Assembly (NCBI GenBank): GCA_010909165.1
Contig: MU008169.1
Span: 2,191,143 to 2,255,142 of the forward strand
Direction of reading: 5' to 3'
DNA length: 64,000 nucleotides
Source of the DNA: Anthoceros angustus
Lineage: Eukaryota; Plantae; Anthocerotophyta
The translations under genes and the position numbers were made by a program. Positions 6,476 through 64,000 of this stretch are shown here, one piece after another (position 1 is the stretch's first letter; every line of letters starts with the position of its first letter). The notes under the pieces are model-generated. The model searched no databases, was not told where the DNA came from, and was given only the letters and a program-made list of their open reading frames with translations.

Positions 6476-6495
6476 AGTTGGCGAGGACGCCAACA

Positions 6496-9358: not shown

Positions 9359-9366
9359 TATAAGAG
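9359..9366 (+). promoter_or_regulatory. Candidate TATA box for family A genomic RNA
   Basis: TATAAGAG in the 3' part of the LTR; the same octamer sits in the 3' part of the B LTRs (29268-29275, 50239-50246). Confidence 0.4.
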
Positions 9367-40000: not shown

Positions 40001-42370
40001 CGGGAGGGTCTTGGTATCATTTACTCGTAAGAAGTTTAGACACTATCCGCTTGCAAGGTGACGCTTCATGTTGACCATTTTGCGTTGAAGTATCTTGTCA
40101 ACAAGCCGGTTTCGTGAAGGATTGCCGTGGGTACTCGCTGCAAGAGTTTGACTACGACGAAACCAGGCAGGAAGCAACATCGAACGCTGATTTCATTTCT
40201 CGTCGGCGGAGAGCGACTTGAGGCCACGATTTCGACGAGGAGTTGGTCGCCACGACTGGTCAAGGAAGGACGAGAAGAAAGCGGGATCATCCGATTTTCT
40301 ATGCCACAGACGACGAAAAGAACTACTCAACCACGGAGCGGGAGGGTCTTGGTATCATTTACTCCTGTAAAAAGTTTAGACACTATCTGCTTGCTTGCAA
40401 GGTGACGTTTCATGTTGACCATTTTGCGTTGAAGTATCTTGTCAACAAGCCAGATTTGTCAGGAAGGATTGCCAGGTGGGTACTACTGCTGCAAGAGTTT
40501 GACTACGACGTCGAAACCAGACCAGGAAAGCAACATCAGAACGCTGATTTCATTTCTCGTCTGAAAACTGGAGAGCGACTTGAGGCAACAGACGACCGAT
40601 TTCCTGACGAGGAGTTGGTCGCCACGACCTGGGTCGAAGGAGAAGGACACGAGCATAATGAAGACGGCCGAAGAAGTGATCAGCAAGTCTTGTTGCTAGA
40701 GGAGAGGCCAAGTGAGCAAGAAGGGAGCGTTGTGCAGGAAAAGCTGCAGCAGGACAATCTGGAAATCCGAGAGAGGATAGGACGGCGCCAGCATGAGCGC
40801 GAGGAGGAGACTGAAATGCTCCTCAAGGGTGAGCAGTCAGGAGCACTGCAAGTGGAGGCCACGAGTTGGCAACAGGAAGGAGATGCATCCCATGACAAGC
40901 TTGAAGAAAACTGGGAGAAGGAAATGGCAGATCATGGGAAATCGCCCATGAGGCGACCATGGGGGCAGCGGGCCAAGGCGTGAGGCCGCCGAAGAAGGCG
41001 AAGTCGGCCCATTCGGAAGGATCAGATGAGGCGCAGCAGTATGTGAACCTAGGGAGAAGCAAGGAGGCGATGGATTTACGGATAGATCCACGCCACTTGG
41101 GGCTGCCGGAGCGGCTAGGAGGAGGCGACGTACGCCGGAGGAGGAGATTAGAACGCGAGGGGCGTTCATGCCCGAGATATCTGTTGAATGGTGAGGTACG
41201 CAAATTCCTGAAGCATGGAATCATGCCCGAGGGGTTGTCCAGGGAGGGGCGAGCCGTCTTTCTCCATAAAGCCTCGCCCTACTGCTTGAAGGCGGGTGTT
41301 CTGTACAAACAAGGCCCGGACGATAAAATTCGAAGATGCCTCGAGGTTGAAGAAGCCGCACTCGTCACGGAGGCACTACATGCAGAAGAGGCTGGTGGAC
41401 ACTATTCGGTACAGGTGACCGTTAAGAAGATTTTGAATGCATTGGTGGCTACGATGCAAAAGGATGTGTGGGAGTTCACCGAGGTGTGATGCGTGTCGAG
41501 GGTTGGGCGGCCTACGTTGTCGACACAATGGCCTCTTACCTACATCTTACCACGCACCTTCGAGAAGTGGGGAATCGACGTGGGACCGATCAAACCACCA
41601 ACGCAATGGACTAAGAAGCAGTACATTTTGGTGGCTACGGATTGTACAAAGATGGTGGAAGCAGCGAGGAAGGATGACGCCTGCAGGTGGCCAAATTTTT
41701 ATTCGAGAACATCATAACGAGGTGGATGTCCTTTAGAGTTGGTCACGACCGGGGACACATTTCCTCAACTCGGTCGTCCCTAACCACCTACTTCAACATT
41801 CCGCATCGAAGACGACTCCTACAACCCCAAAGGCAAATGGATTGTGGAGAAGACGAATGGGTTGCTCGCACAATCCTCACCAAGGTAATGGCACACATGT
41901 ATGATTGGGATGCTAAGTTGCATTCGCATTGTGGGCCTACAGACCCGCGGAGAAGATAACCACCAAGAAGACACCTTATTATCTAACATATGGTATGTCT
42001 CCGTGATGCCGTGGAATTTGAAGTACCACCTACTGATCATGGAGGATGAACGGATGGAGAGGATAGTCGTAGCTAGGTTAGAAGCTTTCATAGCAGAGGA
42101 GCATAGGGAGGATGCTTTAGAAGAAACAGATTCGTGAACTCGTAAAAGATCGGCATGATGGGAGGTTGAGGAAGCAGAGACTATCGTGGACGGGATTTGG
42201 TTCTTCTATATGATAGTCGGTACCTAGACTTTCCAGGAAGCTCAGGCTAAGATGGATGGGACCTTACGAGGTGGTCGCAGATACGAGAATGGATCCGTGC
42301 AACTCGGGTCGGGCGGGTACCACCGAGTCAATGGGTGGAAGGTCAAGAAGTACCTCCACCAGTACTGTTG
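37080..42370 (+). pseudogene. pol: RT, RNase H (both duplicated) and integrase of element B
   Basis: KLNEATKKDHHPLPFMD; MEVFLDDF at 37633-37656 and 39475-39498; NYSTTEREGLGIIYSCKKFRHYL; LHAEEAGGHY; FEKWGID; RWMGPYEV; NGWKVKKY. Confidence 0.92.
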
Positions 42371-42403: not shown

Positions 42404-43437
42404 TGTGGAACGAAAGTTTGGGCAACCAGCCCAAAAGAGCAAGACAAACAAGTTTGATTTTTTTGGCTAGAACGATTGAAGAGGAGCATGCCAAGAAATT
42501 TTCGAGAATCTTGAAGCGGAGTTGTAGGATATTGTTAGGAAGGCAAAAGGATATCCCGGAAGAAGAACGGTTACCCCGACGCGGGAGGGCGTCGAAAGGT
42601 AGGTGGCACTACGTAGGGTCCACCACCCGTAGAAGGAAGCGGACTACATGTGTGGCGGACTACCGTGGTCGACAATCTCGCTAAAAGGAAATTTAGAATA
42701 GAGGATATCCACTATATATGCTCACCAATAGGGAATAAATATATAGAGTAATTAGAAGCGGTTAATTAGGATAGCGGATAGGAAAATAGGTAGTTTAGAT
42801 AGAATTAGGATTTTGGAATGATGAATCCAATCTAGGGTTGTGGCCGCCGGTGGCGACATCCAAAGGAGGGCAAAGTGCGGTTGGCCAACTTCCTCCAATT
42901 TGTGGAAGATTAAGAAGGAGAAGCTCCTCAAGCCAAATTCGTGGATGAGGAAGGCCGAGGTTGGAAAGGCCTTTGCCTTTGCATTGCGAAGACGGTGGGA
43001 GGTCGACCTCCACAAGCATGCTAGAAGCAAGGGAGAGGAAGGAATGCTAGAAGCAAGAGGAGCATGCCAAGAGGAAGAGGAGCTCTCACGCGCCGCCACG
43101 GAAGGGAAGTGGGGCGAGCGCCAGAAACAAAGTCTTGTAGGATTCCCATAGCGAGAGTATAGTCTTAGGATTGACAAGTGATTTGATCAAAAACAAGTTT
43201 GCACACCAAAATCACAAAGCCCTAAACACTCTAAATGTTTGTACACATGATTGTGAGAATGACCTTCTTTTAGGAAGGCTCAAAATTGGATAAAATTGAG
43301 AATCAAGACATTGTGCACACGTAAACAAGACCTAAACTATTCAAAATGGTCTTTTAGTGCGGATTTTTAGCATGCAATTTGGGGTTTAGCAACAAAATTG
43401 AGAAACCTTTCTACCCGATCTTTTAATCTAGAAACCC

Positions 43438-43769
43438 ATGGGAGTTAATGATATCGATCCCCTTGCTCCTTCTTGTCTGGTGGTAACACAATATCGGCGC
43501 GATGCTCGCCGTGCATTGAACTTGAGAATTTATGGTCTTGGTAATGACATTGTTGCACCACTTGTGGCTGCAAAGGAGTTTCTCAATAGGCTAGAGGTCG
43601 ATGTGGTCGCTGCTCGAGCCTTGCTTGGAAAGGATCGGTAGACCGCATATTGATTATGACTTTTCACTCCATGGATGATCGCCTCGTTATGAAGGCTAGG
43701 TCTATGTTACGACGACTTATATATCAATCGATCTTACACCATTGCAATGGAAGATTAAGAAGGAGAAGT
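43438..43769 (+). pseudogene. LINE-ORF1p-like gene of unit Y, partial copy inside the B 3' LTR
   Basis: MGVNDIDP...RRALNLRIYGL...RALLGKD, then RILIMTFHSMDDRL after a frameshift. Confidence 0.6.
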
Positions 43770-45972
43770 GTTTGGAGAGAAGCAGGAGCACCGCTTGGGA
43801 AGTAATTCCTTCCTTTAAACACTTGGAAAGGAAGCCATGCCTCGAGGAGGAAGGCAAGGGAAGGAGCCGCCAGCAAGGCTCTTCCTCGCGAGGAAGGAAT
43901 GCTAGAAGCAAGAGGAGCAAGCAAGGGAGAGGAGGTGAACTTCAATGCCAATTCACTTGCTTTGGCAGCTCAACCCCGATTTGGTTGATTTTCGGCGTGG
44001 CGGAGGAGAACATCCAATTGGGATGGGTGTATGGCCGCCAATGGGCCTACACCAATTTGGAATTGATTGAGGAGTGTTACATCAACCTCCATCAATCGAG
44101 CGCCCTGCCGCACGGAAGGAATGCTAGAACGGATCCCGCTGTTGGGTGGAAGCATTCGGCAGTGTATGGAAGACCGGAGGAAGAGCATGCTCTCTCGAAA
44201 GGTCGAATGGAGGGAAGAGGACATCCCTCTCGACATCCCGCAGGAGTTCCTTGACATGATGGATGGAGGAGAACATCCAACTAGGATGGGTGTATGGCCG
44301 CCAATGGGCCTACACCAATTTGGAATTGATTGAGGAGTGTTACATCAACCTCCATCAATCGGAAGCGCCCGCACGGAAGGAATGCTAGAACGGATCGCTG
44401 GACCGGGGCGAAGTATTCGACAGTGTATGGAAGACCGGAGGAGAGCTCGAATTGCTCTCCTCGAAAGGTCGAATGGAGGAAGAGGACACCCTCTCGACAT
44501 CCCGCAGGAGTTCCTTGACATGATGGATGGAGGTGAAGCCCACGCCAAGAATGGCTGGAAGACCGAGAGCATCAAGGAGTCAAGTGGAGGCTCTTCGCAA
44601 AGATTGTGCTGGGGTTGGTAAATTACCAACGCACTTCTTATTTCAGCACCAACTTCCTCCAATTTGTGGAAGATTTCCATGGGAGCCAAGCCGGATTGGG
44701 GACTATAATGTATGAGGCCTACATCCACCATCGAGAAGCTCCTCAAGCCAAATTCGTGGATGAGGAAGGGCCAAGGCCATGCTACCTCAGCACCTATTTG
44801 GTGCATTTATGGGAAACAGAGGGACTTCTCACAAGCAAGGAGCTTGAAGATGCGTGGCATCCCTTTGAAGTCATCCACCTCCAGCCGAGTTTGGAAAGGC
44901 CTTTGCCTTTTGCATTGCGGAAGACAGTGGGAGGTCAGACCTCCACAAGCATGCTAGAAGCAAGAGGAGAAGATGCGGAGGCAACAAGGTTGCCGGAGTG
45001 GGAATCTTTTCCCCCACAGGAGCAAGCAAGGGGAGAGGAGCAGGAACCGGCCGAGGAAGGCCGAATGGTAGTCTATGAGAGAAGGACCAGGAGGGTGTGA
45101 CCAGAGTGGGGAGTCCCCACCATCTCCTTTGTGCCTACGAGAGGCACCAGACTACCCGGTGGGAGGCGGTCTACCCAAGGGGTGGGCAGCCTACCGTGGT
45201 AGGCGTCACCTACCATGGTAGGTAGGCGACTACCACGTGGGGAGCACGCATAGGCGGGCACCCCACGCCAAGAATGGCTGGAAGACCGGAGGAAAGGCAA
45301 GGGAAGGAGAAGCAGGCGTGCGCGCCGAGGCCACCATCTCCGCGGGTGGGAGGCGGATGGAGCGACAGTGAAGGACCCCGCCGCCATGGCCCGAAAGTGC
45401 GGGGAGCTGGAAATTTCCAGAAGAAGGGGGGTGGAAGGACCCCTAGGAGAATTCTGGGAGCTTGTGAAGCACTCACCGCGTGGATTTGAAGGGGCTAGGG
45501 ACCTAGCAGCCTCCTTGTGGGCATGCCAAGAGGAAGTGAAATCTCAAGACATGGCCGGAGGAAAGGCAGGACTAATGGCAATTGGAGGCCATGGAGTCCG
45601 ATGAAAAGGCAGCCAAATTGGAAAAGGTGGAGAAGCTCCAGCGACCTCATGGATGATCGCCGGTTATGAAGGCTAGGTCTATGTTACGACGACTCGTATA
45701 TATCAATACGATCTTACACCATTGCAATGGAAGATTAAGAAGGAGAAGTTACCGCTGTGAGTCGTGCGCAAGTCAACGGCTTTCTTTCATGGGGATGAAT
45801 TTGTGGTGTTTAGCCCTCGTTCATGCATTTCATTAACATTATTGATTGATTGAAGATTATTTGTCTTGTTTGAATTTTACCTTTGCATGTCTAGACCATT
45901 TTACCGCAATCTATGTAGTTGCCATATTTCAATCCTATGACGAAGATCCGTCCTTAGTGGACTTGAATAAAT

Positions 45973-46056
45973 TTCTTCTTCTTCCTCTTCATCTTCTTCA
46001 TCTTCTTCATCTTCTTCTCTTCTTCTTGTTGTTCTTCTTCTTCCTCCTCTTCTTCT

Positions 46057-46091
<35 letters not shown>

Positions 46092-46170
46092 TCTTCTTCT
46101 TCTTCTTCTTCTTCTTCTTCTTCTTCTTCTTCATCTTCTTCTTCTTCTTCTTCATCTTCTTCTTCTTCTT
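45973..46170. repeat. (CTT)n microsatellite of unit Y
   Basis: Imperfect CTT array with the same flanks as at 51687, 58475 and 62609. Confidence 0.95.
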
Positions 46171-46374
46171 AAAGTTATTAATTGTATTTAGAAAACTATG
46201 AAACTTCTTCACCTCTAGGTATTGTATGTATACATGTTTAGTATAGTGATTATTTTTCACTAGCATAGTAAATAAAAATATTTATTTAATTATTTATGTA
46301 TGCTATTCTTTGCAACAACAAAGAAACATACAACCATATTACATACATATCGGCCCTTCTTGTTTCCACCTTTA

Positions 46375-46990
46375 AATTTGCATACTAAATTGTGCTAACA
46401 TGAAGTCTTGCGATATGCAATCTCGCATCACTTGACCATGGTACACATCTAGCTCCGCATCCAAGACCTCGCACTTTTGACTATGGCGGAGGTGGCTACC
46501 TCCTCTTCCTATAACATGTGCCGCCACACTCCCATTTGGGGTCGTTGGTTTGCCGCTTGTATTATCATTCGCATATCAATTGCCTCAATGGTCATTGGTT
46601 TGCCATCAAGATCCAAGTGGTTGTTTGGCTTAGTGGTTCGACGAGCTTCAGAAGAGAACCACAATAGGGTTGCAACAAAGTCGTGGCTCAAGTATCACAA
46701 AGTTAGAGACTTCAACTTAAACGTGAGACAAGATCAAACAACAAAATCCAAATGTAAAATTGAAGTTCAAAACCGCCCAATCATATATCGACAAGCTAGG
46801 GCACAAGTAACACTAAATATGCACAAGTTCCACTAAGTACTTAAGCATCTAACTGCACACCAAAGTGTGTAGTTACAAACCTTGGAGGTTAAGTAGGTGC
46901 GTCTTGCTACACGGTTATCTCAGAAGTCGTGTGTCAACACCTCCGAGCCCCGCCTCGAGAACCTCTCGCCCTGGCAGCATGTCCGCATTG
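46375..46990 (-). pseudogene. ALY/REF-like gene, C-terminal part (fragment)
   Basis: LDGKPMTIEAI and LDAELDVYH on the minus strand. Confidence 0.6.
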
Positions 46991-49900
46991 GATGACGCGG
47001 AGAAGGTCTGAGGGAAGTTGTCACAAGTCAAGAAAGAGCCATTCGGGCAACAACCCAAAAATTCATGGAGGCAAAAGGCGGAGAGCATTTTGCCCAATTA
47101 GAGCAAGAAAGGAAAAGCAAGAGGCACTAGGAAAGGAGAAGCAACTCGGCAAGTGGAGGCTCTTCGCAAAGATTGTGCTGGGGTTGGTAAATTACCAACG
47201 CACTTCTTATTTTCAAAGACCAACTTCCTCCAATTTGTGGAAGATTTCCATGGGAGCCAAGCCGGATTGGGGACTATGTATGAGGCCTACATCCACCATC
47301 GAGAAGCTCCTCAAGCCAAATTCGGTGGATGAGGAAGGCCAAGGCCCTACCTTAGCACCTATTTGGTGCATTTATGGGAAACCGAGGGACTCCTCACAAG
47401 CAAGGAGCTTGAAGATGCATGGCATCCCTTTGAGGTCATCCACCTCCGAGGTTGGAAAGGCCTTTGCCTTTGCATTGCGAAGACGGTGGGAGGTCGACCT
47501 CCACAAGCATGCTAGAAGCAAGAGGAGAAGATGCGAGGCAACAAGGTTGCCGGAGTGGGAATCTCTTCCCACAGGGGCAAGCAAGGGAGAGGAGCGGCCG
47601 AGGAAGGCCGAATGGTGGTCTATGAGAGAAGGACCACAGGGAGGTGTGACCAGAGTGGGGAGTCCCCACCATCTCCTTTGTGCCTACGAGAGGCACCCGC
47701 AGACTACCCCTGAGGCGGTCTACCCAAGGGGTGGGCACTACCGTGGTAGGCGTCACCTACCATGGTAGGTAGGCACTACCATGAGGGGAGCACCCTGCAG
47801 TGGCGGGCACCCCACGCCAAGAATGGCTGGAAGACCGGAGGAAAGGCAAGGGAAGGAGAAGCACGTGCGCCGAACCACCATCTCCGCTGGGTGGGAGGCG
47901 GATGGAGCGACGTGAAGGGGACCGCCTGGCCCGAGAGTGCGAGAGCTGGAAATTTCCAGCAAGAAGGCGAGGTGGAATTAGGACCCCTAGGAGAATTCTG
48001 GGAGCTTGTGAAGCACTCACGTGGATTTGAAGGGGCTAGGGACCTAGCAGCCTCCTTGTGGGCATGCCAAGAGGAAGTGAAATCTCAAGACATGGCCGGA
48101 GGAAAGGCAGGACTAATGGCAATTGGAGGCCATGGAGTCCGATGAAAAGGCAGCCAAATTGGAAAAGGTCAGAGAAGCTCCAGCGACCTCATGGATGACG
48201 CGCGGAGAAGTCTGGAGGTTGTCATGGTCAAGAAAGAGCCATTCGGGCAACAACCCAAAAGGATTCTTGGAGGCAAAAGGCGGAGAGCATTTTGCCCAAT
48301 TAGAGCAAGAAAGGAAAAGCAAGGTGAGGCACTAGGAAAGGAAAAGCAAGGGAGAGCAGTGATGGCTACTCAAGCCATCAAAATCCGGATATGGGAGAGG
48401 AGTTGAGAAGGAGAAGCTCCTCAAGCCAAATTCGTGGATGAGGAAGGGAAGGAGAAGCACAAGACCGAGTCGGAGCGAGCGAAGGAATGCTTGGCAAGCG
48501 GAGAGGAGGGCTTGCCCAATTAGCGACTTGGAACAAAGGAGGTCTCGAGGAGGAGGAGCGCCACAAGAAGGTGGTGCATGGAATCGGTAGTGAGGAAGCG
48601 ATTTTGGGACTATGCCCTTGAGCAAAATTGGCCAAAGTGAGGGAGGAGAATGTAACCTCCATGTGAAGGTGGGAGAATTAACCACCTCAAGAGATGCCTA
48701 CAAGGTAGGTGTGAAGATGGAGAGTGGCCCACGGAGATTGATGATCTCCAAATGCAATATCACAACTTGGGGCTCACCTCCACAGATCTTGAAGGCCAAC
48801 AACGAAGTCTTACGGTTGGCCAAAGGAGGACATTGGGTCCTCATGATGATGATGACAAGGAGCGCAACATGCGGAGGCCTCCGATTTTGATGAGGCCATC
48901 GAAATGGACTCGAGGAACTGAGGAGTCGAGGTGAAGGAGCCACCGCGCCCGCGGAGATGGAGGCAAAAGGCGGAGAGCAAGGAGAGGGACAGCCCACCTC
49001 GGGGTCACCTACCTCAGTGGTGACCACCCTACCACGTAGTCCGCCGGACTACCGTGGGGCCACACACGCCGCGGACTACCGGGTAGCGGGCAGCGCAGCG
49101 GGGGGAGTTGGGCCGGCCCAAGGCCCAAGATGGAAAGGCCGGGGGTCGTAGTATACCCCTAAGGAGCTGGGGTGGTGGGAGAGACAACCCCACCGAGGAA
49201 ACTAGAGGTCCGACCCTGAGGAGGAGGAGGGGTGAGGAATCCCTTATCCCACGAGTAAGGGAGGAACCGGACCCGAGGAGGAGTCCAACGCAAAAGGGCC
49301 CGAGAGATTAGGCAAAATCCGCATGGTGGGCGATGGGGATGAAGGGTGCTCTATGATAGGTATGGACAAATCAACAAAGGCAAGAGCAATGAAGATCCCG
49401 ACCCAAGAAACCCTCACGGCGGAGAAAGGAAAGAAGGAAGTAAGAGTTAGGGGCGACTACCACGATGGTAGTCACCCTGTAGTCTGCCCGGACTACCGCG
49501 GTAGGGTCGATGAACGGCGCGACAACGGAGATGGAGGAAGGCGCCTAGGTGCGCGGGAAGCGCGATTCGGAGGAGGAGGAGTCCAACGCAAAAGGGCCCG
49601 GAGAGATTAGGCAAAATCCATGGTGGGCGGATGGGGATGAAGGGTGCTCTATGATAGGTATGGACAAATCAAACAAGGCAAGAGCAATGAAGATCCCGAC
49701 CAAGAAACCCTCACGGCGGAGGCGGGAAGAAGGAAAGAAGGGGTCGACTACCACGATGGTAGTCACCTAGAGTCGTGGACTACCGCGTAGGGTGCGAATA
49801 ACGGCGCGAGGCGGGACCCGAGGAGGAGGAAGGCGCCTAGGTGCGCGGGAAGCGCGATTCGGAGGGCCAGAGGAATCCAGACGCCGCCCGCGGAGATGGA

Positions 49901-51686
49901 GGAAGGGCAAGATTGTACTTGCCCACACATTAGGAAGCGGACAAAGGCTGGGAAGGGCAAGAGCAAAAGGAGGCGAGGGAGCCAATCCACCACGGACACG
50001 TCACCACCGAGGTGAAGACTAGATATGGTCAAGACCATAAATGCTAGGTAGAAGAATAGGAAGGACGGTGATGTAATCGACATCCTTCGAGGATAGACTT
50101 AGGTGAAGTTGCTAGAATAGAATTTACCAAGGACAATAGACTTAGGTGCCGACATTAAATCTTGTGTAGGAAATAATAGAATATTGGAAAAGGTGACCTG
50201 TAGGGTCACCCAAGGGAGGTTGTATGTGGAAGGCCTCCTATAAGAGGAGGAGGATTTCACAAGTAAAGTATCATGTCTTGCGCCCACGCTCAGTCCTTTG
50301 CCATTACAGAGGAATTTCGTCAGTGAGCCAACACAGTCTGGTAGAGAGGAAGTCGCGGTGGTCGGAGTGCTTGGTGGAGGACTTGCTCGCAAGTGCCTAA
50401 ACGAGTTGCTCCCCTTGTGAATGGTTGCTGTGAAATTGCTTTGCTTTGGGTGTGTGGCAAATGCCGGGCTCTCGGCTTGAGGGTAGACTACAGGAAAGAC
50501 TCCTGGAGGTTCTCTGTCGTGTCAAACTCATAGCAACCGCCCAAGGAAGAACTTGCTGGTGGAGGCGGACCCAGGCGGTTGTGCGTAGCGGTCGAAACCA
50601 AGAAGCCATCGAGGTTAGACTAGGAGGAAGAGGATGAGGAGATGAGAAGATGAGTAGAGGATTAGAGGTGTAGGTGTTAGTGGAAGGCCACAGGCGAGCC
50701 TAAGGGACGAATCCCAAATCCCTGCAAGTAAACGAGCGCTCGAGTGGAGAAGAGTAGTCTTAAGTAGGAAATCGCGGTGTGAACCGGGGGTCCACAGGCG
50801 CCCGTGGTAGGCTCCTTCTTCGAGGCGGGACACACTGTGTTGTGTCGTTGTAGGTCAAAGTTTGGTCTTAGAAGTAGGGACGAAATCGCGGTGTGAACCG
50901 GGGGTCCACAGGCGCCCGTGGTAGGCTCCTTCTTCGAGGCGGGACCCGCATGTGTTGTGTCGTTGTGGGTCGAGGTTGGCGATTTCAAGCGGTGCAAGTG
51001 GTGCACTGTGAGAGGGAGAGTAGAGGCGCCTTGCTTGTTTAGAAGGCCGAGAGTGTGTCAGTGGCGATTGGTGATCACAAGGCCTCGAACTTTCACACAA
51101 GTCTCATGGGACGAAACCCAGCGTCTGACGGCAGTGGGATAAGTGTGGCCGCTATAGTGGGAGGACCAGGGCGCCCGAATTCTCCCTACCACACTCCCAT
51201 ACACACCACGCCTTGGCTATGAAAAGTGAGAGTCGGACTAGCACAAGCATTTAAGTTCCAGGACCCCAAGCTTCAAGGCTATTCACACGAGCGTTGATCG
51301 ATTACAAGTTCAAGGTAGGGATGTCATGCTCAACGCTGAGTTGGCTCACGCATCCACCAACCTCAAGCTCGTGAGAAAATATACGTAACGCTAGCTAGAG
51401 TGGTGTAGCACCGCCACTTGACCACGTGGCCATCGGTGTGAAGGTCCCGAAAGGAGAAGTTACCTGCTTGAGTCTGCCGTAAGTCAACGGCTTTTCTTTC
51501 ATGGGGATGAATTTGTGGTGTTTAGCCCTCGTTCATGCATTTCATTAACATTATTGATTGATTGAAGATTATTTGTCTTGTTTGAATTTTACCTTTGCAT
51601 TCGTCTAGACCATTTTACCGCAATCTATGTAGTTGCCATATTTCAATCCTATGACGAAGATCCGTCCTTAGTGGACTTGAATAAAT

Positions 51687-51859
51687 TTCTTCTTCTTCCT
51701 CTTCATCTTCTTCATCTTCTTCTTCTTCTTCTTGTTGTTCTTCTTCTTCTTCCTCCTCTTCTTCTTCTTCTTCTTCTTCTTCCTCCTCTTCTTCTTCTTC
51801 TTCTTCTTCTTCTTCATCTTCTTCTTCTTCTTCTTCATCTTCTTCCTCTTCTTCCTCTT
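51687..51859. repeat. (CTT)n microsatellite of unit Y
   Basis: Seen directly. Confidence 0.95.
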
Positions 51860-54408
51860 GCAAGTTATTAATTGTATTTAGAAAACTATGAAACTTCTTC
51901 ACCTCTAGGTATTGTATGTATACATGTTTAGTATAGTGATTATTTTTCACTAGCATAGTAAATAAAAATATTTATTTAATTATTTATGTATGCTATTCTT
52001 TGCAACAACAAAGAAACATACAACCATATTACATACATATCAGGCCCTTCTTGTTTCCACCTTTAAATTTGCATACTAAATTGTGCTAACATGAAGTCTT
52101 GCGATATGCAATCTCGCATCACTTGACCATGGTACACATCTAGCTCCGCATCCAAGACCTCGCACTTTTGACTATGGCGGAGGTTGGCTACCTCCTCTTC
52201 CTATAACATGTCCCTTGCACTCAAGGACATTTAAAGAGGAAGGTTCCTACTAGTATACAAACGAACATGAACGAACATGTAGCCCCCAAGGCCTTCAGGT
52301 ATATTGCCACACATAAATACAAGACAACGGATGAGGAATGTGGCGAGAGAGATGAAGAAAATTGAATCGAAAATGCTTGATAGAGAAAATTAAGAATAGA
52401 AAAATGCTTGAATAGAGAAAATTAAGAATAGGAAATGCTTGATAGAGAAAATTAAGAACATCACATCTTTTACACTAGGTGGTCTTGCTTAAGTTTTTGG
52501 GCAATTTTCTTAAAAGACTATTATTTACATCGAGATGCTATCATAACATAAAGTTCTATGATATGAATGCCGCATCAACTTTTTCCGCCACTCTCCAACA
52601 ATCTTGCGATATGCAATCTCGCATCACTTGACCATGGTACACATCTAGCTCCGCATCCAAGACCTCGCACTTTTGACTATGGCGGAGGTCGTTGGCTACC
52701 TCCTCTTCCTATAACATGTGCCGCCACACTCCCATTTGGGGTCGTTGGTTTGCCGCTTGTATTATCATTCGCATATCAATTGCCTCAATGGTCATTGGTT
52801 TGCCATCAAGATCCAAGTGGTTGTTTGGCTTAGTGGTTCGACGAGCTAAAGAAGAGAACCACAATAAGGGTTGCAACAAAGTCGGGCTCAAGTATCACAA
52901 AGTTAGAGACTTCAACTTAAACCGTGAGACAAGATCACAACAAAATCCAAATGTAAAATTGAAGTTCAAAACCGCCCAATCATATATCGACAAGCTAGGC
53001 ACAAGTAACACTAAATATGCACAAGTTCCACTAAGTACTTAAGCATCTAACTCTTATTCCTCTAAGTCATACATCCGGTCAAGGGAACTATGTTGGCATG
53101 TTATAACTTTGCACGCCATACATTTGCTCTTCACATGATACAAATTATAGACACAATGGCTAGTAGTCGAACTAAGTGCACACATTTGATTGTATTATGT
53201 GCATTGACCGCCACATTTGCATCAACACATTCCTCATTGTCCTCTACGAGTGTGTGCTTTGCAGCACCAAATTATGCTTCGTGGAGTGAGGCGCCAAGAC
53301 ATAATAATATATGAGATGGTAGTTGACCAAGTCTCGGACATGTTGTGTGCGACCGCCATAGCTTGGGATTACGTGGCTTCGCTCAACTTATAATCGATGC
53401 TAGTGGGCTTGGAAGATTGGTGTTATTATCCCATCTCTAACCCTAAAGAAGATTGAGAATCGTCATGAGCACATGAGCCATATGGAGTGGATGAAAAGCT
53501 CAAGACACCTAGAATGAAGTTTGACAAAGCGAATCAAGTAGCACAACAAAGATTAAGAAGGAGAAACCAAGGTTATTTAAGGTTGAGCTATTGGCTGATG
53601 TAGTACTTACTCTAGAACAAAATCCAAGACTTGCATAGAGAAATTACTATAGGCTCGCCACCATCGAGATCAATTTTCTTAAGCATGATTAATATATATG
53701 TTTCCACCCAAAACAATAAGATTGTGGATTCTCTTTAGGGAATTTGGTTTTGGATTGCATAGCTGGAGTTCCAACCTATACCACACCTGGCCGACAGCCT
53801 TGCGGATCAAATGCTTCTTCAATACCCGCCAGCCAATGATCCACCGGATGCTCGTCTTTAAAGTGATGCGTACATATCCGTTCAATTCTGTTGTTCAACG
53901 ATGTTTGTAGGTGTTCTTTTGCTAGTGAAGATGGGTTACTCATCTTGACCTCGCACTTTTGACTATGGCGGAGGTCGTTGGCTACCTCCTCTTCCTATAA
54001 CATGTGCCGCCACACTCCCATTTGGGGTCGTTGGTTTGCCGCTTGTATTATCATTCGCATATCAATTGCCTCAATGGTCATTGGTTTGCCATCAAGATCC
54101 AAGTGGTTGTTTGGCTTAGTGGTTCGACGAGCTAAAGAAGAGAACCACAATGAAACGGAAAAAACTATAAATAAATAGCTTGATATAAATAACAAGGATA
54201 ATAATTTTTATTTTTATTTTTATTAAAACTTAAAAGCAGAATGTCAAAATGTCTTTAAGAACAAGAAAAGAAACCGGATATCACCATCTTTTAGTGAACA
54301 ATCTTATTTGATGATGATCGAGAGTTATCATGAGCTTTTGATACGTTATCGCGATAGATTGCCTTGGAGGCCTATATATGTGGGGTCGTGTTGCAATCTT
54401 GAACAAAA

Positions 54409-55319
54409 TTGTGCTAACATGAAGTCTTGCGATATGCAATCTCGCATCACTTGACCATGGTACACATCTAGCTCCGCATCCAAGACCTCTGCACTTTTGA
54501 CTATGGCGGAGGACCTCCTCTTCCTATAACATGTGCCGCCACACTCCCATTTGGGGGTCGTTGGTTTGCCGCTTGTATTATCATTCGCATATCAATTGCC
54601 TCAATGGTCATTGGTTTGCCATCAAGATCCAAGTGGTTGTTTGGCTTAGTGGTTCGACGAGCTAAAGAAGAGAACCACAATAGTAGGGTTGCAACAAAGT
54701 CGTGGCTCAAGTATCACAAAGTTAGAGACTTCAACTTAAACTGTGAGACAAGATCACAACAAAATCCAAATGTAAAATTGAAGTTCAAAACCGCCCAATC
54801 ATATATCGACAAGCTAGGCACAAGTAACACTAAATATGCACAAGTTCCACTAAGTACTTAAGCATCTAACTGCACACCAAAGTGTGTAGTTACAAACCTT
54901 GGAGGTTAAGTAGGGTGCGTCCTACACTTTATCCGTAAGTCGTGTGTCAACACCTCCGAGCCTCCGAGAACCTCTCCCCTTGGAGCCGCATTGGATGACG
55001 AGCACCGCCACGCCTTGCTTTTTATTGAGCTTGATCAAGTCATCAAGACTCAATTTGCCTTCCTTAGCGCAACGGTTCCATACATATGGTGACCGCCACC
55101 GTGGTCCTTTGCCTTAAGCTTGATCAAGTCATGCTTATTCTTTTATTGAGCTTGATCAAGTCATCAAGACTCAATTTGCCTTCCTTAGCGCAACGGTTCC
55201 ATACATATGGTGACCGCCGCTTTTTATTGAGCTTGATCAAGTCATCAAGACTTAGATGACCACAACGTTGTCTTAGGTCCTCGAGCAACTCATAATTATT
55301 GCTTGGTCGAGGAATTCAT
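54409..55319 (-). pseudogene. ALY/REF-like gene, second near-complete copy (frameshifted)
   Basis: Three SLDDLIKLNK motifs at ~55015-55255, then LDGKPMTIE and SAEVLDAELDVYH; homologous to 58849-59826. Confidence 0.7.
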
Positions 55320-55472
55320 TATTGCTTGGATGTTTGTGCTCTATAATGTATTTAAAATTGGTCAATATGGATTATTTTTGTGAAAATATATTCAACCGTG
55401 GTGGTTGCTCTCAATATCCTAGGCAAATCAATTGTTAGGAGTTCTCGAGGTGGAACCCTTGCAAGGATGAGC

Positions 55473-55820
55473 AATTTTACCGACCACTTATTGTTTGATA
55501 GATGTTCAATTTTACCGACCACTTATTGTTTGATAGATGTTCAATTTTAGACCACTTATTGTTTGATAGATGTTCAATTTTATAGACCACTTATTGTTTG
55601 ATAGATGTTCAATTTTATAGACCACTTATTGTTTGATAGATGTTCAATTTTACCGACCACTTATTGTTTGATAGATGTTCAATTTTACCGAGCACTTATT
55701 GTTTGATAGATGTTCAATTTTATAGACCACTTATTGTTTGATAGATGTTCAATTTTACCGAGCACTTATTGTTTGATAGATGTTCAATTTTATACACCAC
55801 TTATTGTTTGATAGATGTTC
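55473..55820. repeat. 35-bp minisatellite (~10 copies, GACCACTTATTGTTTGATAGATGTTCAATTTTACC)
   Basis: Head-to-tail units with no spacers; also at 59978-60326 and ~56665-56760. Confidence 0.95.
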
Positions 55821-56777
55821 ACGAGGTGGAACGAGCGAGGATGAGCAACAACAAACCACTTCTTGTTAGGCTTTCCCGCTACCATGGCTCTTGTGAAAAT
55901 GTCCATCATGTTGAAGACGATTTTGCTCATGATGGTCTTTCTCTTGGCTTGAGGGCCACGCAATGTTTGGAGGTGCTACTACCAAGGACTTGCACGTGGA
56001 CTATGAGTTCCTCCGATGCGAATGTGGTGGCATGGTCATAGTTTTAACCTTATCAATGTTATGAATTGCGTAAACTTACGCCAACTTAAGGCTGGCCTTG
56101 ATGAACTTTGTGACGTGAACTAAGCAATGTCATGCCTAACACTTCAGCCCAAATGTGGTAACATGGTCATAGTTTTAACCTTATCAATGTTATGAATTGC
56201 GTAAACTTACGCCAACTTAAGGCTGGCCTTGATTGCCACGAAACCTTTTATGTTGAAGACGAGTGACGAAAAGACAGAGCACTCTTGCCATGGAGCTTTT
56301 TATGTTGAGGTGCACTTTTGGTCCTAATAGTTGGATCTGATAGATGTTCAATGCGTAGTTCTAAGTGATTTGGTTGTATGTACTGATGTAGCTTGTTGGG
56401 TAGAGGAAGGAAAAAGAGTTGACGGGTATTCTTGCCATGGAACTTTGATGTTGGGATCTACTTTTAAAGTAGTAGGGAGTTCTCATCCGATTATAAATGA
56501 AAATGTTTTTCATTTAAAGGTTTTAAATGGTCGTGATCTCTTTGTTGATTCTAATCATGGAGCTGCCAACATGTGTCTCCGAAAGGGGTTATTCGCCATT
56601 AAAGGGTTTGGGGTTCCTAAAGGCCAAAAACGACCTTCAAAACGGGCCAAAACGCATCATCTTGACCACTTATTGTTTGATAGATGTTCAATTTTATAGA
56701 CCACTTATTGTTTGATAGATGTTCAATTTTACCGAGCACTTATTGTTTGATAGATGTTCACGAGGTGGAACCCTTGC

Positions 56778-56885
56778 AAGGATGATTTCAAGGATGATTT
56801 CAAGGATGATTTCAAGGATGATTTCAAGGATGATTTCAAGGATGATTTCAAGGATGATTTCAAGGATGATTTCAAGGATGATTTC
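56778..56885. repeat. Nine perfect copies of a 12-bp unit (AAGGATGATTTC)
   Basis: Seen directly; only two copies at the related locus ~61274-61297. Confidence 0.95.
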
Positions 56886-57921
56886 AAGGATGAGCAACAA
56901 CAAAACAAAACAAAACCTCAAACAACAAAACAAAACAAAACCTCAAACAACAAAATCCAAATGTCTAAGAAACAAAGTCGGGCTCAAGTATCACAAAGTT
57001 AGAGACTTCAACTTAAACCGTGAGACAAGATCAAACAACAAAATCCAAATGTCTAAGAAACAAAGTCGGGCTCAAGTATCACAAAGTTAGAGACTTCAAC
57101 TTAAGGCTGGCCTTGATTGCCACGAAACCTTTTATGTTGAAGACGAGTGAAAAGAGGAAGGAAATGGGGCAATGCGCCTGAGGTTGGCGCATGCGAGTGT
57201 GTCAAGCCCGCGACGTCGGGCGCATTTGGAGTCCCCAATCTTGCCGGGCATCCAACGATGGAAGTGGTGTATTCGAGACTTAATCTTGCCGGGTGTCCAG
57301 TGAAGTGTTGGAGTGGATGCGCTGACGTCCGGCGTATTTGTATATGTATTATTTCTATCTGATAGAAGAATATGTGCTTTGGCAGGGGCCCGAAAAGTGC
57401 AGGAGAGCTGGAAATTTCCAGCAAGAAGACAGGAGGGGTGGGATTAGGACCCCTACATCTTTTGAATCTTTAGACATTTGGCTTGGGCCCAGCTCCAAGT
57501 GCACACCATACCACTTTCGTTGTCGCATTGCAGGCGAATCAAGAAGAGCATCGGTCAAGGAAGATATTATTGTGCCAAATGTCTAAGAAACAAAGTCTTG
57601 TAGGATTCCCATAGCGAGTATAGTCTTAGGATTGGTGATGCAGTGAAAGGTTGATCAAACAAGTTTGCACACCAAAATCACAGAAGCCCTAAACACTCTA
57701 AATGTTTGTACACGCGGATTGTGAGAATGACCTTCTTTTAGGAAGGCTCAAAATTGGATAAAATTGAGAATCAAATGCGTTTGTGCACACGTAAACAAGA
57801 CCTAAACTATTCAAAATGGTCTTTTTAGTGCGGATTTTTAGCATGCAATTTGGGGTTTGCGGCGTGTGCAAAAGGTTCTTGGAGAAACCCTTTCTACCCG
57901 ACGCTATTCCGGTAGAAACCC

Positions 57922-58353
57922 ATGGGAGTTAATGATATCGATCCCCTTGCTCCTTCTTGTCTGGTGGTAACACAATATCGGGCGGGGACTCGTGCATTGA
58001 ACTTGAGAATTTATGGTCTTGGTAATGACATTGTTGCACCACTTGTGGCTGCAAAGGAGTTTCTCAATAGGCTAGAGGTCGATGTGGTCGTTGCTCGAGC
58101 CTTGCTTGGAAAGGATCTTTAGAGACCGCATATTGATTATGACTTTTCACTCCATGGATGATCGCCTCCAGTTATGAAGGCTAGGTCTATGTTACACGAC
58201 TATATATCAATCGATCTTACACCATTGCAATGGAAGATTAAGAAGGAGAAGTTACCTTTGAGGCTCGTCAAGTCAACGGCTTTCTTTCATGGGGATGAAT
58301 TTGTGGTGTTTAGCCCTCGTTCATGCATTTCATTAACATTATTGATTGATTGA
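57922..58353 (+). pseudogene. LINE-1 ORF1p-like (RRM plus C-terminal domain) gene without ORF2, ~145 aa (frameshifted here)
   Basis: Consensus of copies: RRALNLRIYGL...FLNRLEVDVVVARALLGKD-RILIMTFHSMDDRL.VMKARSML...DLTPLQWKIKKEKLP...RKSTAFFHGDEFVV. This follows the RRNNLRIYG / I.V.F / DLT..Q pattern of Transposase_22-type ORF1. Confidence 0.68.
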
Positions 58354-58474
58354 AGATTATTTGTCTTGTTTGAATTTTACCTTTGCATTCGTCTAGACCA
58401 TTTTACCGCAATCTATGTAGTTGCCATATTTCAATCCTATGACGAAGATCCGTCCTTAGTGGACTTGAATAAAT

Positions 58475-58538
58475 TTCTTCTTCTTCCTCTTCATCTTCTT
58501 CATCTTCTTCTTGTTGTTCTTGTTGTTGTTCTTCTTCT

Positions 58539-58570
<32 letters not shown>

Positions 58571-58644
58571 TTCCTCCTCTTCTTCTTCTTCTTCTTCTTC
58601 TTCTTCATCTTCTTCTTCTTCTTCTTCATCTTCTTCTTCCTCTT
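58475..58644. repeat. (CTT)n microsatellite between the convergent genes
   Basis: Seen directly. Confidence 0.95.
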
Positions 58645-58848
58645 GCAAGTTATTAATTGTATTTAGAAAACTATGAAACTTCTTCACCTCTAGGTATTGT
58701 ATGTATACATGTTTAGTATAGTGATTATTTTTCACTAGCATAGTAAATAAAAATTATTTATTTAATTATTTATGTATGCTATTCTTTGCAACAACAAAGA
58801 AACATACAACCATATTACATACATATCAGGCCCTTCTTGTTTCCACCT

Positions 58849-59826
58849 TTAAATTTGCATACAGCTAAATTGTGCTAACATGAAGTCTTGCGATATGCAA
58901 TCTCGCATCACTTGACCATGGTACACATCTAGCTCCGCATCCAAGACCTCTGCACTTTTGACTATGGCAGGAGGTCGTTGGCTACCTCCTCTTCCTATAA
59001 CATGTGCCGCCACACTCCCATTTGGGGGTCGTTGGTTTGCCGCTTGTATTATCATTCGCATATCAATTGCCTCAATGGTCATTGGTTTGCCATCAAGATC
59101 CAAGTGGTTGTTTGGCTTAGTGGTTCGACGAGCTCGCGAAGAGAACCACAATAACTGCTAGGGTTGCAACAAAGTCGTGGCTCAAGTATCACAAAGTTAG
59201 AGACTTCAACTTAAACTGAGACAAGATCACAACAAAATCCAAATGTAAAATTGAAGTTCAAAACCGCCCAATCATATATCGACAAGCTAGGCACAAGTAA
59301 CACTAAATATGCACAAGTTCCACTAAGTACTTAAGCATCTAACTGGCACACCAAAGTGTGTAGTTACAAACCTTGGAGGTTAAGTAGGGTGCGATTCGTC
59401 TTGCTACACTATCTCAGAAGTCGTGTGTCAACACCTCCGAGCCCCGCCTCGAGAACCTCTCGCCCTGGCAGCCATATTCCGCATTGGATGACGAGCACCG
59501 CCACGCCTTGCTTTCTTTTTATTGAGCTTGATCAAGTCATCAAGACTCAATTTGCCTTCCTTAGCGGCAACGGTTCCATACATATGGTGACCGCCACCGT
59601 GGTCCTTTGCCTTAAGCTTGATCAAGTCATGCTTATTCTTTTTATTGAGCTTGATCAAGTCATCAAGACTCAATTTGCCTTCCTTAGCAGCAGCGGTTTC
59701 ATGCATGTGGTGACCGCTGCCGTGCTTTTTATTGAGCTTGATCAAGTCATCAAGACTTAGATGACCACAACGTTGTCTTAGGTCCTCGAGCAACTCATAA
59801 TTATTGCTTGGTCGCGAGGAATTCAT
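58849..59826 (-). CDS. ALY: ALY/REF (THO4/Yra1)-like mRNA export adaptor with triplicated N-terminal UAP56-binding motif and an incomplete RRM; may be a pseudogene
   Basis: ORF 59428-59826 has LSLDDLIKLNKK three times (compare ALYREF MSLDDIIKLNR) and then an RG-rich stretch. ORF 58849-59151 has NNHLDLDGKPMTIEAI (compare the plant ALY RRM end NNVQLDGKPMKIEI), GRGG, and KSAEVLDAELDVYH (compare SAEELDAQLDAY / LDADLDKYH). Probable intron at ~59215-59365. Confidence 0.75.
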
Positions 59827-59977
59827 TATTGCTTGGATGTTTGTGCTCTATAATGTATTTAAAATTGGTCAATATGGATTATTTTGTGAAAATATATTCA
59901 ACCGTGGTGGTTGCTCTCAATATCCTAGGCAAATCAATTGTTAGGAGTTCTCGAGGTGGAACCCTTGCAAGGATGAG

Positions 59978-60326
59978 CAATTTTACCGACCACTTATTGT
60001 TTGATAGATGTTCAATTTTACCGACCACTTATTGTTTGATAGATGTTCAATTTTAGACCACTTATTGTTTGATAGATGTTCAATTTTATAGACCACTTAT
60101 TGTTTGATAGATGTTCAATTTTATAGACCACTTATTGTTTGATAGATGTTCAATTTTACCGACCACTTATTGTTTGATAGATGTTCAATTTTACCGAGCA
60201 CTTATTGTTTGATAGATGTTCAATTTTATAGACCACTTATTGTTTGATAGATGTTCAATTTTACCGAGCACTTATTGTTTGATAGATGTTCAATTTTACC
60301 GACCACTTATTGTTTGATAGATGTTC
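59978..60326. repeat. 35-bp minisatellite (~10 copies) upstream of the ALY-like gene
   Basis: Seen directly; flanked by imperfect direct repeats CGAGGTGGAAC...AGGATGAGCAA. Confidence 0.95.
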
Positions 60327-62045
60327 ACGAGGTGGAACGGCGAGGATGAGCAACTTAACAAACCACTTCTTGTTAGGCTTTCCTAAGGTGCAACGCTAAG
60401 GTGGGCAACTCAACCAACCACTTAGATGATGGCTCCTTTATAGATGACCTTGAATACTAGATACTACAGGATATTTGATATTTCCTTTCTAGCATCTTCA
60501 AATTGTTTTTCTTGTGATAGGTACTATAAATGGATATTTGATATTTCCTTTATGGCACGTTCAAGTTGTTTTTCTTGTAATACATACTATTAATGGATAT
60601 ATGATATTTCCTTTCCAAAGATGTTCTAATTGTTTTTCTTGTGGTAGCGATATTATATTTATATTTGGTATTTTCTTTTGTGGTATCTTTGAATTTCTTT
60701 CACGCTGCTCGTATTGGTCCATCTTAGTAACAAAATGGCATGGTTGTGCAACTTAATAATTAAGTCTCCTCACCTTGCCTTCTTAATGTACAACATGTCA
60801 ATTGGAGAACTAAACTACACCAAATGCTGTAGGAATAGAAGTTGATGTGGGAAATAGTTACCACACGTGATTAGACAAAGGCATTTGTTTCGTTCCTTGA
60901 TGAACTTTGTGACGTGAACTAAGCAATGTCATGCCTAACACTTCAGCCCAAATGTGGTAACATGGTCATAGTTTTAACCTTATCAATGTTATGAATTGCG
61001 TACAAACTTACGTCAACTTAAGGCTGGCCTTGATTGCCACGAAACCTTTTATGTTGAAGCTCACGATGGCCTCCCAAACTGCTTCTTACTAAGGGCTGTC
61101 CATGGCATTCAAACCTTCATCAAAAGGAGCCATTCAGATATCTAGTTTCACGAAATCTTTATCAAGGTGCCCAATATTGCAAGGCGCAAGCGGCAATTAG
61201 GAGACCCCAATACTTTAGTGTAGATGAGACCATCCAATTTGTACACTTTACATAAAGAACTACTCATCATATTATGATTTCAAGGATGATTTCAAGGACT
61301 ATCAAACTACGAGAGAAACAAACCTAGACTTGTAGGATAAGAGGTTAGTCGTAGAGACTTTGCGTTGTGGAATAGGGTTTGACCTACTTTGGGCTTTTCT
61401 TGTGAATACATAAGCATTGGGATTCTCATCTTATCTCCATTTTCAAATTTCATGGCCAAACGGAAAAAACATGACTACAATAATATAAATTAAACCACTA
61501 GCACAACAAAGATTAAGGCATAATAAAGAAAAAAAGAATAAAACATAAAACATAAAACAAAACAAAACCTCAAACAACAAAACAATAGAGAGAACCTTGT
61601 GCATCTTTTGAATCTTTAGACATTTGGCTTGGGCTCACTCCAAGTGCACACCATACCACTTTCATGCAAAGCGAATCAAGAAGAGCATCGGTCAAGGAAG
61701 ATATTATTGTGCCAAATGTCTAAGAAACAAAGTCTTGTAGGATTCCCATAGCGAGAGTATAGTCTTAGGATTGACCACGAGTGAAAGGTTGATCAAACAA
61801 GTTTGCACACCAAAATCACAAAAGCCCTAACACTCTAAATGTTTGTACACGTGCGGATTGTGAGAATGACCTTCTTTTTAGGAAGGCTCAAAATTGGATA
61901 AAATTGAGAATCATGTTTGTGCACACGTAAACAAGACCTAAACTATTCAAAATGGTCTTTTTAGTGCGGATTTTTAGCATGCAATTTGGGGTTTGCAAGT
62001 GTGCAAAAGGTTCTGGAGAAACCCCTCACGCATCGGTAGAAACCC

Positions 62046-62487
62046 ATGGGAGTTAATGATATCGATCCCCTTGCTCCTTCTTGTCTGGTGGTAACACAAT
62101 ATCGGCGATGCTCGCCGTGCATTGAACTTGAGAATTTATGGTCTTGGTAATGACATTGTTGCACCACTTGTGGCTGCAAAGGAGTTTCTCAATAGGCTAG
62201 AGGTCGATGTGGTCGTTGCTCGAGCCTTGCTTGGAAAGGATGGTAGAGACCGCATTGATTATGACTTTTCACTCCATGGATGATCGCCTCCAGTTATGAA
62301 GGCTAGGTCTATGTTACGGACGACTCGTTATATATCAATCGATCTTACACCATTGCAATGGAAGATTAAGAAGGAGAAGTTACCGCTTTCGAGTCTTGTC
62401 CGCAAGTCAACGGCTTTCTTTCATGGGGATGAATTTGTGGTGTTTAGCCCTCGTTCATGCATTTCATTAACATTATTGATTGATTGA
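62046..62487 (+). pseudogene. LINE-1 ORF1p-like gene, second full-length copy (frameshifted)
   Basis: Homologous to 57922-58353; ORF 62296-62487 gives DLTPLQWKIKKEKLP. Confidence 0.68.
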
Positions 62488-62608
62488 AGATTATTTGTCT
62501 TGTTTGAATTTTACCTTTGCATTCGTCTAGACCATTTTACCGCAATCTATGTAGTTGCCATATTTCAATCCTATGACGAAGATCCGTCCTTAGTGGACTT
62601 GAATAAAT

Positions 62609-62760
62609 TTCTTCTTCTTCTTCATCTTCTTCATCTTCTTCTTGTTGTTCTTGTTGTTGTTCTTCTTCTTCTTCTTCTTCTTCTTCTTCTTCTTCTTCTT
62701 CTTCTTCTTCTTCTTCTTCTTCATCTTCTTCTTCTTCTTCATCTTCTTCTTCTTCCTCTT
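62609..62760. repeat. (CTT)n microsatellite of unit Y
   Basis: Seen directly. Confidence 0.95.
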
Positions 62761-62963
62761 ACAAGTTATTAATTGTATTTAGAAAACTATGAAACTTCTT
62801 CACCTCTAGGTATTGTATGTATACATGTTTAGTATAGTGATTATTTTTCACTAGCATAGTAAATAAAAATATTTATTTAATTATTTATGTATGCTATTCT
62901 TTGCAACAACAAAGAAACATACAACCATATTACATACATATCAGGCCCTTCTTGTTTCCACCT

Positions 62964-63958
62964 TTAAATTTGCATACAGCCTAAATTGTGCTAACATGAA
63001 GTCTTGCGATATGCAATCTCGCATCACTTGACCATGGTACACATCTAGCTCCGCATCCAAGACCTCTGCACTTTTGACTATGGCGGAGGTGGCTACCTCT
63101 TCCTATAACATGTGCCGCCACACTCCCATTTGGGGTCGTTGGTTTGCCGCTTGTATTATCATTCGCATCCTACAATGGAGCCAACAAAACAAAACAAAAC
63201 AAAACCTAGACTTGTAGGATAAGAGGTTAGTCGAGAGACTTTGCGTTGTGGAATTTCTATCCTCAAGAGCAGAACTGTGTTTACTCTTCCTCTTCTTCTT
63301 GTTTCCACCTTTAAATTTGCTGTGGCGCGTGTACAAAGAGCTTTTGATGGAAACGGCAGCCCCGGTTTCATCACAACTCAAGCCGCCACACTCCCATTTG
63401 GGGTCGTTGGTTTGCTTGTATTATCATTCGCATATCAATTGCCTCAATGGTCATTGGTTTGCCATCAAGATCCAAGTGGTTGTTTGGCTTAGTGGTTCGG
63501 AGCTTTGGTAGAGAACCACAATCGTTAGGGTTGCAACAAAGTCGTGGCTCAAGTATCACAAAGTTAGAGACTTCAACTTAAACTGTGAGACAAGATCAAA
63601 CAACAAAATCCAAATGTAAAATTGAAGTTCAAAACCGCCCAATCATATATCGACAAGCTAGGCACAAGTAACACTAAATATGCACAAGTTCCACTAAGTA
63701 CTTAAGCATCTAACCGGCACACCAAAGTGTGTAGTTACAAACCTTGGAGGTTAAGTAGGGTGCGACGTCTTGCTATCTCAGAAGTCGTGTCAACACCTCC
63801 GAGCCTCGAGAACCTCTCGCCCTTGGCAACAGCGTCCGCATTGGATGACGAGCACCGCCACGCCTTGCTTTCTTTTTATTGAGCTTGATCAAGTCATCAA
63901 GACTCAATTGCCTTCCTTAGCGCAACGTTCCATACATATGGTGACCGCCACCGTGGCG
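62964..63958 (-). pseudogene. ALY/REF-like gene, third copy (rearranged; 5' end missing)
   Basis: SLDDLIKLNK at ~63875-63905, LDGKPMTIE at ~63445-63470, SAEVLDAELDVYH at ~63035-63075; scrambled insert at ~63165-63385. Confidence 0.6.
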
Positions 63959-64000
63959 GGCGTGGTAGAGGAAGGCGGCACGAGTGCCACCGCGATGCCG

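Follow-up and report, generated by a model that had tools for sequence, protein, structure and literature searches.

We have analysed a window of 64,000 nucleotides from Anthoceros angustus (contig MU008169.1). Within 1 kb of its minus strand lies a set of ALY-type gene pieces, carried by a longer repeat unit (Table 1). The pieces follow one another on a single strand: the N-terminal UAP56-binding motif, an RG-rich region, an APY motif, a gap, the end of an RRM, an RGG stretch and a C-terminal motif. This order of parts matches the one described for ALYREF (PMC7744094), therefore the ALY ancestry of the locus is well supported. That said, the locus is a relic of the ALY/REF family and not a member of it. 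The focal copy keeps its first 132 codons open, yet it is unable to encode an ALY-like protein.

Table 1. Features of the ALY/REF relic, its sister copies and the repeat unit that carries it, in positions of the 64,000-nucleotide window.
Feature	Position	Strand	Description
Exon-1 ORF	59428-59826	-	What is left of ALY exon 1: unrelated 22-aa lead, UAP56-binding motif three times, partial fourth, RG-rich tail; TGA at 59430-59428
UAP56-binding motif copy 1, LSLDDLIKLNKK	59725-59760	-	5′ flank unrelated to the flanks of copies 2 and 3
UAP56-binding motif copy 2, LSLDDLIKLNKK	59638-59673	-	HGSGHHMHETAAAKEGK directly before
Partial motif DLIKL within NKHDLIKLKAKD	59614-59628	-	Remnant of a further duplication
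UAP56-binding motif copy 3, LSLDDLIKLNKK	59515-59550	-	HGGGHHMYGTVAAKEGK before, RG region after, as in canonical ALY
Broken exon-1 remainder	59372-59427	-	ARRIAPYLTSK in another frame; stops in 3/3 frames; ends at donor-like AAG/GTTTGT
Intron-like spacer, GT...AG	59155-59371	-	217 nt; stops in all frames; without RRM remnant; conserved among copies at least as well as the ORF pieces
Terminal exon(s) relic	58849-59154	-	Last ~20 RRM residues (..NNHLDLDGKPMTIE), short RGG stretch, C-terminal motif KSAEVLDAELDVYH; stop at 58851-58849
Sister copy B	54380-55340	-	Three motifs plus partial, in different frames; seven indel events in exon-1 part; 10-bp deletion in RGG region
Sister copy C	62955-64000	-	Cut by window end; one motif seen; in-frame stop; ~270-bp insertion/duplication in terminal exon relic
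Sister copy D	46335-47000	-	Amid LTR-retrotransposon remains; without any N-terminal motif; C-terminal part frameshifted
Fragments E2 (52050-52214) and E (52570-53052)	52050-53052	-	Terminal-exon relic; both frameshifted
Fragment F	53947-54151	-	Terminal-exon relic, LDGKPM part only; frameshifted
Repeat unit carrying the relic	57456-61601	+	~4146 bp; next unit from 61602; rearranged ~6-kb unit 51451-57455 before

The first piece is an intact open reading frame that runs from ATG (59826) to TGA over 132 codons. Its 22-residue lead is unrelated sequence, after which LSLDDLIKLNKK occurs three times, together with a partial DLIKL. The preliminary description of this DNA had reported the same triplication and partial copy, with coordinates and strings that are right to within a few bases, and the HHM-type sequences that it placed before copies 2 and 3 are there as well. 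The duplication unit measures 123 bp, and a comparison of 59513-59630 with 59636-59750 gives 88% identity. The motif core and its neighbours are identical over 54 nt between the repeats, while the 51 nt upstream contain seven differing positions. The codon changes between repeat units 2 and 3 are six non-synonymous and three synonymous. The ancestral start was probably the ATG within the 'HHMYG' of HGGGHHMYGTVAAKEGK, before motif 3. Each duplicated unit would therefore have taken a few bases of 5′UTR, the ATG and the motif, and the earlier proposal that the ancestral N-terminus was tandemly duplicated in frame is supported in this form.

Behind the RG-rich tail the frame is broken. From the RG region to the APY motif there is a stop in each of the three frames, in 4/4 copies that keep this stretch, and each of the four has small indels of its own there. 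We take ARRIAPYLTSK to be the 'R..APY' motif, which in ALY proteins comes after the first RG region; this agrees with the REF2 alignment given below. The AAG/GTTTGT after it is a good splice donor, and this ancestral donor (59372/59371) sits behind stops in all frames. The terminal-exon ORF piece (58849-59151) lies in the same genomic frame as the 132-aa ORF. We worked through the possible junctions by hand, combining the GT donors at 59434 and 59432 with the AG acceptors at 59159-59158 and 59156-59155, and found no in-frame GT-AG join of the two ORF pieces. A single continuous (spliced) frame does not run through all of the ALY parts. In the terminal-exon piece LDGKPMTIE (59097-59071) and the C-terminal motif (58959-58918) are both located on the minus strand after the RG region, as the preliminary description had it.

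The two ORF pieces were searched separately, with no joined model. A phmmer search of the N-terminal piece against the PDB aligns residues 6-55 of mouse REF2 with ORF residues 78-127 (50 residues, E 0.0046), an alignment that takes in both the motif and the Arg-rich stretch that follows it. Three Pfam profiles had been suggested for these sequences, and their results differ. FYTT, to which UIF with its own UAP56-binding motif belongs, gives three matching stretches in the N-terminal piece (E 3e-5; 23.9 bits, cut-off 21). No other Pfam family passes its cut-off for the relic, and the FYTT match spans just 28 of the 310 profile positions (23-50), which are the motif itself. FoP_duplication, the C-terminal motif region common to ALY and CHTOP, stays below its cut-off of 24.6 bits with the C-terminal piece (18.8 bits, E 0.0025); copy B gives a similarly weak score (E 0.005). 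The ESM-Atlas clusters nearest to the C-terminal piece are all FoP_duplication (0.88), a sub-threshold lead only. RRM_1 has no match in either ORF piece at E values up to 10, and in our test for an RRM residues 159-192 of human THO4 match at E 5 only.

The preliminary description had spoken of an RRM with an eroded, unrecognisable first half. Its C-terminal strand (LDGKPMTIE) is indeed present, whereas the sequence of the first half is absent. The RRM exons were deleted rather than eroded, with 217 intron-like bases now sitting between the pieces.

An exhaustive HMMER search of 1.84 billion protein representatives found no relatives of the 132-aa ORF. Exact look-ups returned no record for either piece. 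The word-index protein searches returned nothing for either piece, a result of little weight as their length window shuts out full-length ALYs. Some matches were considered and rejected. The only two significant HMMER matches are long repeat proteins of another type: P0001, whose repeats are (LTADQVMKLAKKSNW)n-like, and P0002, which is BlaR/M56-like and repeats (LSVDELINLSKYGVD)n. Both are convergent matches between short repeats. Matches of the C-terminal piece to ribosomal protein S7 in the PDB (E 0.03-0.6) are due to chance and rest on one short QAANQRP word.

A comparison with known systems helps to place the relic. ALY/REF/Yra1 (THOC4) is the closest in its parts. The motif LSLDDLIKLNKK resembles MSLDDIIKLNRN of mouse REF2, and the RG-rich stretch, R..APY, LDGKPM.IE, RGG and a putative C-terminal motif, SAE.LDAELD.Y, occur in the same order. 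An N-terminal UAP56-binding motif and an RG-rich region are found in the relic; a central RRM is not. In contrast to ALY proteins the relic lacks the RRM except for its last ~20 residues, carries the N-terminal motif 3.5 times, has a frame that is broken between RG and APY, and belongs to a locus that has been multiplied and is decaying.

Plants have both ALY1-4 and the RRM-less UIEF1/2 (PMC8421220), and CHTOP has two closely spaced UAP56-binding motifs (PMC7744094). UIF, plant UIEF1-2 (FYTT) and CHTOP are RRM-less adaptors that have one or two UAP56-binding motifs, and in the relic, too, the motif leads into basic sequence and not into an RRM. The relic differs from them in that its FYTT match is the motif alone, with no FYTT-like body, and in that its RG/APY region, its LDGKPM piece and its C-terminal piece resemble those of ALY. 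A further likeness is to repeats that bear gene fragments, where pieces of unprocessed pseudogenes are amplified in macrosatellites, segmental arrays or capturing transposons: a retained intron-like spacer, unconstrained sequence, many copies in the same orientation and a kilobase unit. Unlike gene-fragment-bearing transposons, the relic's unit shows no transposon termini or TE proteins.

The window holds six further copies or fragments of the relic, all in one orientation and adjoining LTR-retrotransposon remains. Several copies among retrotransposons had been noted before, and this is what we find. The ORF is intact in one of the three exon-1 copies in the window, which at a divergence of 3-7% is no surprise, and the sister copies have many indels of 1-10 bp inside their 'coding' parts. 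Copy B is frameshifted right behind the ATG and between the motifs. It shares the architecture of three motifs plus a partial one, therefore the triplication is older than the unit's multiplication, and a local artefact of assembly does not explain it. Copy C differs in its visible part: at 64000-63896 on the minus strand, the sequence upstream of its one visible motif is unrelated to the region of focal motif 2 and the partial motif. Copy C may represent an ancestral-like variant with a single motif, or else it may have been rearranged.

Contigs from an independent DNA run, X1, give a second view of the family. They are short, and yield no transcript ends, strand or calibrated copy number. 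Two 1-bp deletions, at 59024 and 59639, are found in these contigs too, with 35% and 18% of the summed depth, and because an independent run shows both, at least these frame-breaking indels are real. The contigs span the whole motif-repeat region at high depth, and among the joints listed there is none that skips a repeat. Over 59428-59826, the deletion at 59639 is the sole difference among those listed; many copies may therefore keep the 132-aa ORF. A side observation comes from another run, X2, which is labelled as a different organism (B). One of its contigs, 257 nt long with a depth of ~3, matches 58909-59155 at 95-99% with nine gaps; the match is to the terminal-exon relic and to no other part of the unit. 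This contig could belong to the same repeat family, or to a true ALY exon, in a related species.

The coding pieces show no sign of purifying selection. Substitutions per aligned site against the focal copy are equal to or above those of the spacer: copy D has 6/271 in ORF 2 and 0/238 in the spacer, and copy C has 8/152 in ORF 1 and 4/247 in the spacer. The changes in ORF 1 are spread evenly over the codon positions, 6/6/5 at positions 1/2/3. None of the runs listed as containing the relic is an RNA run. One small contig set, X3, from the same sample and guessed to be RNA, touches only 40 bases elsewhere in the unit, 58213-58254, with unlike sequence on both sides; given the size of the data, this is weak evidence against transcription.

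The relic is part of a larger repeat. The next unit, seen as 61602-63168, adjoins the focal one directly and head to tail, and is 93.5% identical to it. The rearranged unit that precedes them holds extra partial relics, and further unit fragments lie at 43123-43769 and 45648-46997; all of the units and partial units have one orientation, and LTR-retrotransposon remains interrupt their head-to-tail order. In X1, 1965 short contigs map onto one unit, with a summed word depth of 3000-10000 over ~57990-61660 and of ~350 over 57400-57990. This number of contigs and the very high summed depth mark the unit, or at any rate a core of ~3.7 kb, as a high-copy repeat, its copy number being uncalibrated. 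The head-to-tail arrangement, the shared orientation and the high copy number are those of a kilobase-unit tandem repeat of the macrosatellite-like kind. Searches of the unit for Rfam families and tRNAs found none. Upstream lie Ty3-like LTR-retrotransposon remains, with RT_RNaseH at 40243-40983 and a zinc knuckle at 35115-35684.

The unit contains some smaller repeats, which we describe in their own right. On the plus strand an AATAAA is followed by ~170 bp of (TTC)n (58455-58644), tail to tail with the ALY relic, and the same tail is found at 45973-46170, 51687-51859 and 62609-62760. The left parts of the units may represent 3′ ends of a non-LTR retroposon. Just upstream of the relic ATG each unit has a tandem repeat of 35 bp, CAATTTTACCGACCACTTATTGTTTGATAGATGTT, with ~10 copies that are 95% alike (59978-60327 and 55472-55821, also 56664-56760). 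It has the top summed depth in X1, about 25000 in the bin 60193-60339. A 63-bp repeat lies at 60469-60678.

Our reading of these results is that the locus is very probably a dead ALY/REF gene fragment that has been multiplied in a repeat unit of ~4.1 kb, and not a functional export adaptor. The source would have been a host gene for an ALY/REF-type mRNA export adaptor, of which exon 1 and the terminal exon(s) were kept. Its RRM-coding middle would have gone, with a single intron-like spacer remaining. Tandem duplications of ~90-125 bp, older than the amplification of the unit, would have multiplied the start of the gene, so that three and a half motifs came to share one frame. Slippage or unequal exchange at short repeats and at the TTGATCAA palindrome in the motif DNA is the probable origin of these duplications. 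Since amplification the copies would have decayed neutrally. The anatomy, the arrangement of the copies, the disabling lesions and the absence of constraint are shown by our results; we infer the mechanism of duplication and that the locus has no protein function.

Two other origins were tried and rejected. A processed pseudogene would not have kept the intron-like GT..AG spacer, and the sequence downstream on the sense strand is (GAA)n rather than poly(A). Capture by a Pack-MULE or another TIR transposon was dismissed as there are 0 inverted repeat pairs of at least 30 nt in 50000-64000.

How the fragment spread, and whether its open frame is used, can be read in other ways. It is possible, though we think it unlikely, that the relic was captured and spread by a transposable element, either Helitron-like or a non-autonomous retroelement, while still being non-functional as a protein gene. 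The step in X1 depth, ~10x higher over ~57990-61660 than over 57400-57990, looks as if it outlined a core of ~3.7 kb, and both the AATAAA-(TTC)n tail on the plus strand and the 35-bp tandem repeat, which is subterminal-like in its placement, could belong to such an element. However, the depth step perhaps comes from unmapped copies that are more than 10% diverged. There are no inverted terminal repeats in 50-64 kb, a pattern search of the unit found no tRNA-Met primer-binding site, and Pfam scans of the ORFs in the unit gave no domain of a transposase, an RT or any other TE protein. The copies in the window also share one orientation and are largely head to tail.

A bolder idea is that expression of the 132-aa ORF yields a motif-only microprotein, with three UAP56-binding motifs and an RG tail but neither RRM nor C-terminal motif, that titrates or clusters UAP56, acting as a decoy or a high-avidity recruiter and perhaps helping the RNA of the repeat or of a transposon. 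The ORF is open and has an ATG, its motifs match the canonical UAP56-binding sequence of REF2/ALYREF (PMC7744094), and the focal sequence looks near to the family majority in X1. We consider this very unlikely all the same. The sister with the same architecture, copy B, is frameshifted behind its ATG and between its motifs, there is neither a codon-position bias nor a synonymous excess, no RNA run is among those listed as containing the relic, and the 1.84 billion representatives gave no conserved relative. The identity of the motif-core DNA includes the synonymous sites. It could reflect recent duplication or gene conversion, which it fits better than selection on the protein, although selection is also compatible with it. 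We give slightly less credence again to a master copy whose 132-aa microprotein clusters or titrates UAP56 and either exports the repeat's own intron-poor RNA or interferes with the host TREX. The preliminary description had proposed that a four-motif, RRM-deficient variant could act as a recruiter or decoy of TREX. This is not supported, in view of the stops, the indel-bearing sisters, the neutral pattern of substitution and the lack of an RNA match or relatives in the sets searched. It had also named, as grounds for giving up the idea, an untranscribed locus with fixed disabling mutations; of these two, the disabling mutations are what we found. That the locus encodes a complete, spliced paralogue of ALY, having four motifs and an RRM of reduced length, is hardly credible. 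The ORF pieces do share a genomic frame and have GT and AG near their ends, but no donor and acceptor pair that we tried keeps the frame, the ancestral donor lies behind stops, RRM_1 is not matched, and the terminal exon is frameshifted in other copies, with the 59024 indel confirmed by independent reads. It is equally hard to believe that the triplication is an assembly artefact. The duplication does sit inside a repeat, but two copies in the window share the layout of three motifs plus a partial one while each has private differences, the flanks of the repeats differ, and the depth of independent contigs over the region is high. The repeats are real, as had been supposed.

As read here, a decaying gene fragment in a repeat matters little. 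It is a warning for annotators, as relics of this kind may present ORFs that look intact and contain striking arrays of motifs. It also offers a neat natural case of the in-frame microduplication of a short linear motif. Only if the 132-aa ORF were expressed and bound UAP56 would it be an interesting case, a repeat-borne mimic of a plant mRNA export adaptor, carried on a selfish element.

Some further features of the window deserve a brief mention. A perfect 12-bp tandem repeat, CAAGGATGATTT, is present in one unit only (56777-56893, 9.8 copies, 100% matches). It seems to have expanded very recently, and it makes artificial repeat ORFs. The plus strand has a strong and sustained excess of purines over 1-50000, with a GC skew of ~+0.2 and an AT skew of ~+0.2 in most 2-kb bins, which is absent from 50-64 kb; the base counts for the whole window are A 17973, G 17912, T 14437 and C 13678. 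The excess probably comes from LTR retrotransposons in the same orientation with a purine-rich sense strand. Finally, tandem duplications of 106-114 bp at 30802-31002 and 50768-51030 have a common core, GGCGCCCGTGGTAGGCTCCTTC...GTGTTGTGTCGTTGTAGGTCAA. The two are likely to be one LTR-family sequence, the second of them at the border of the repeat array.
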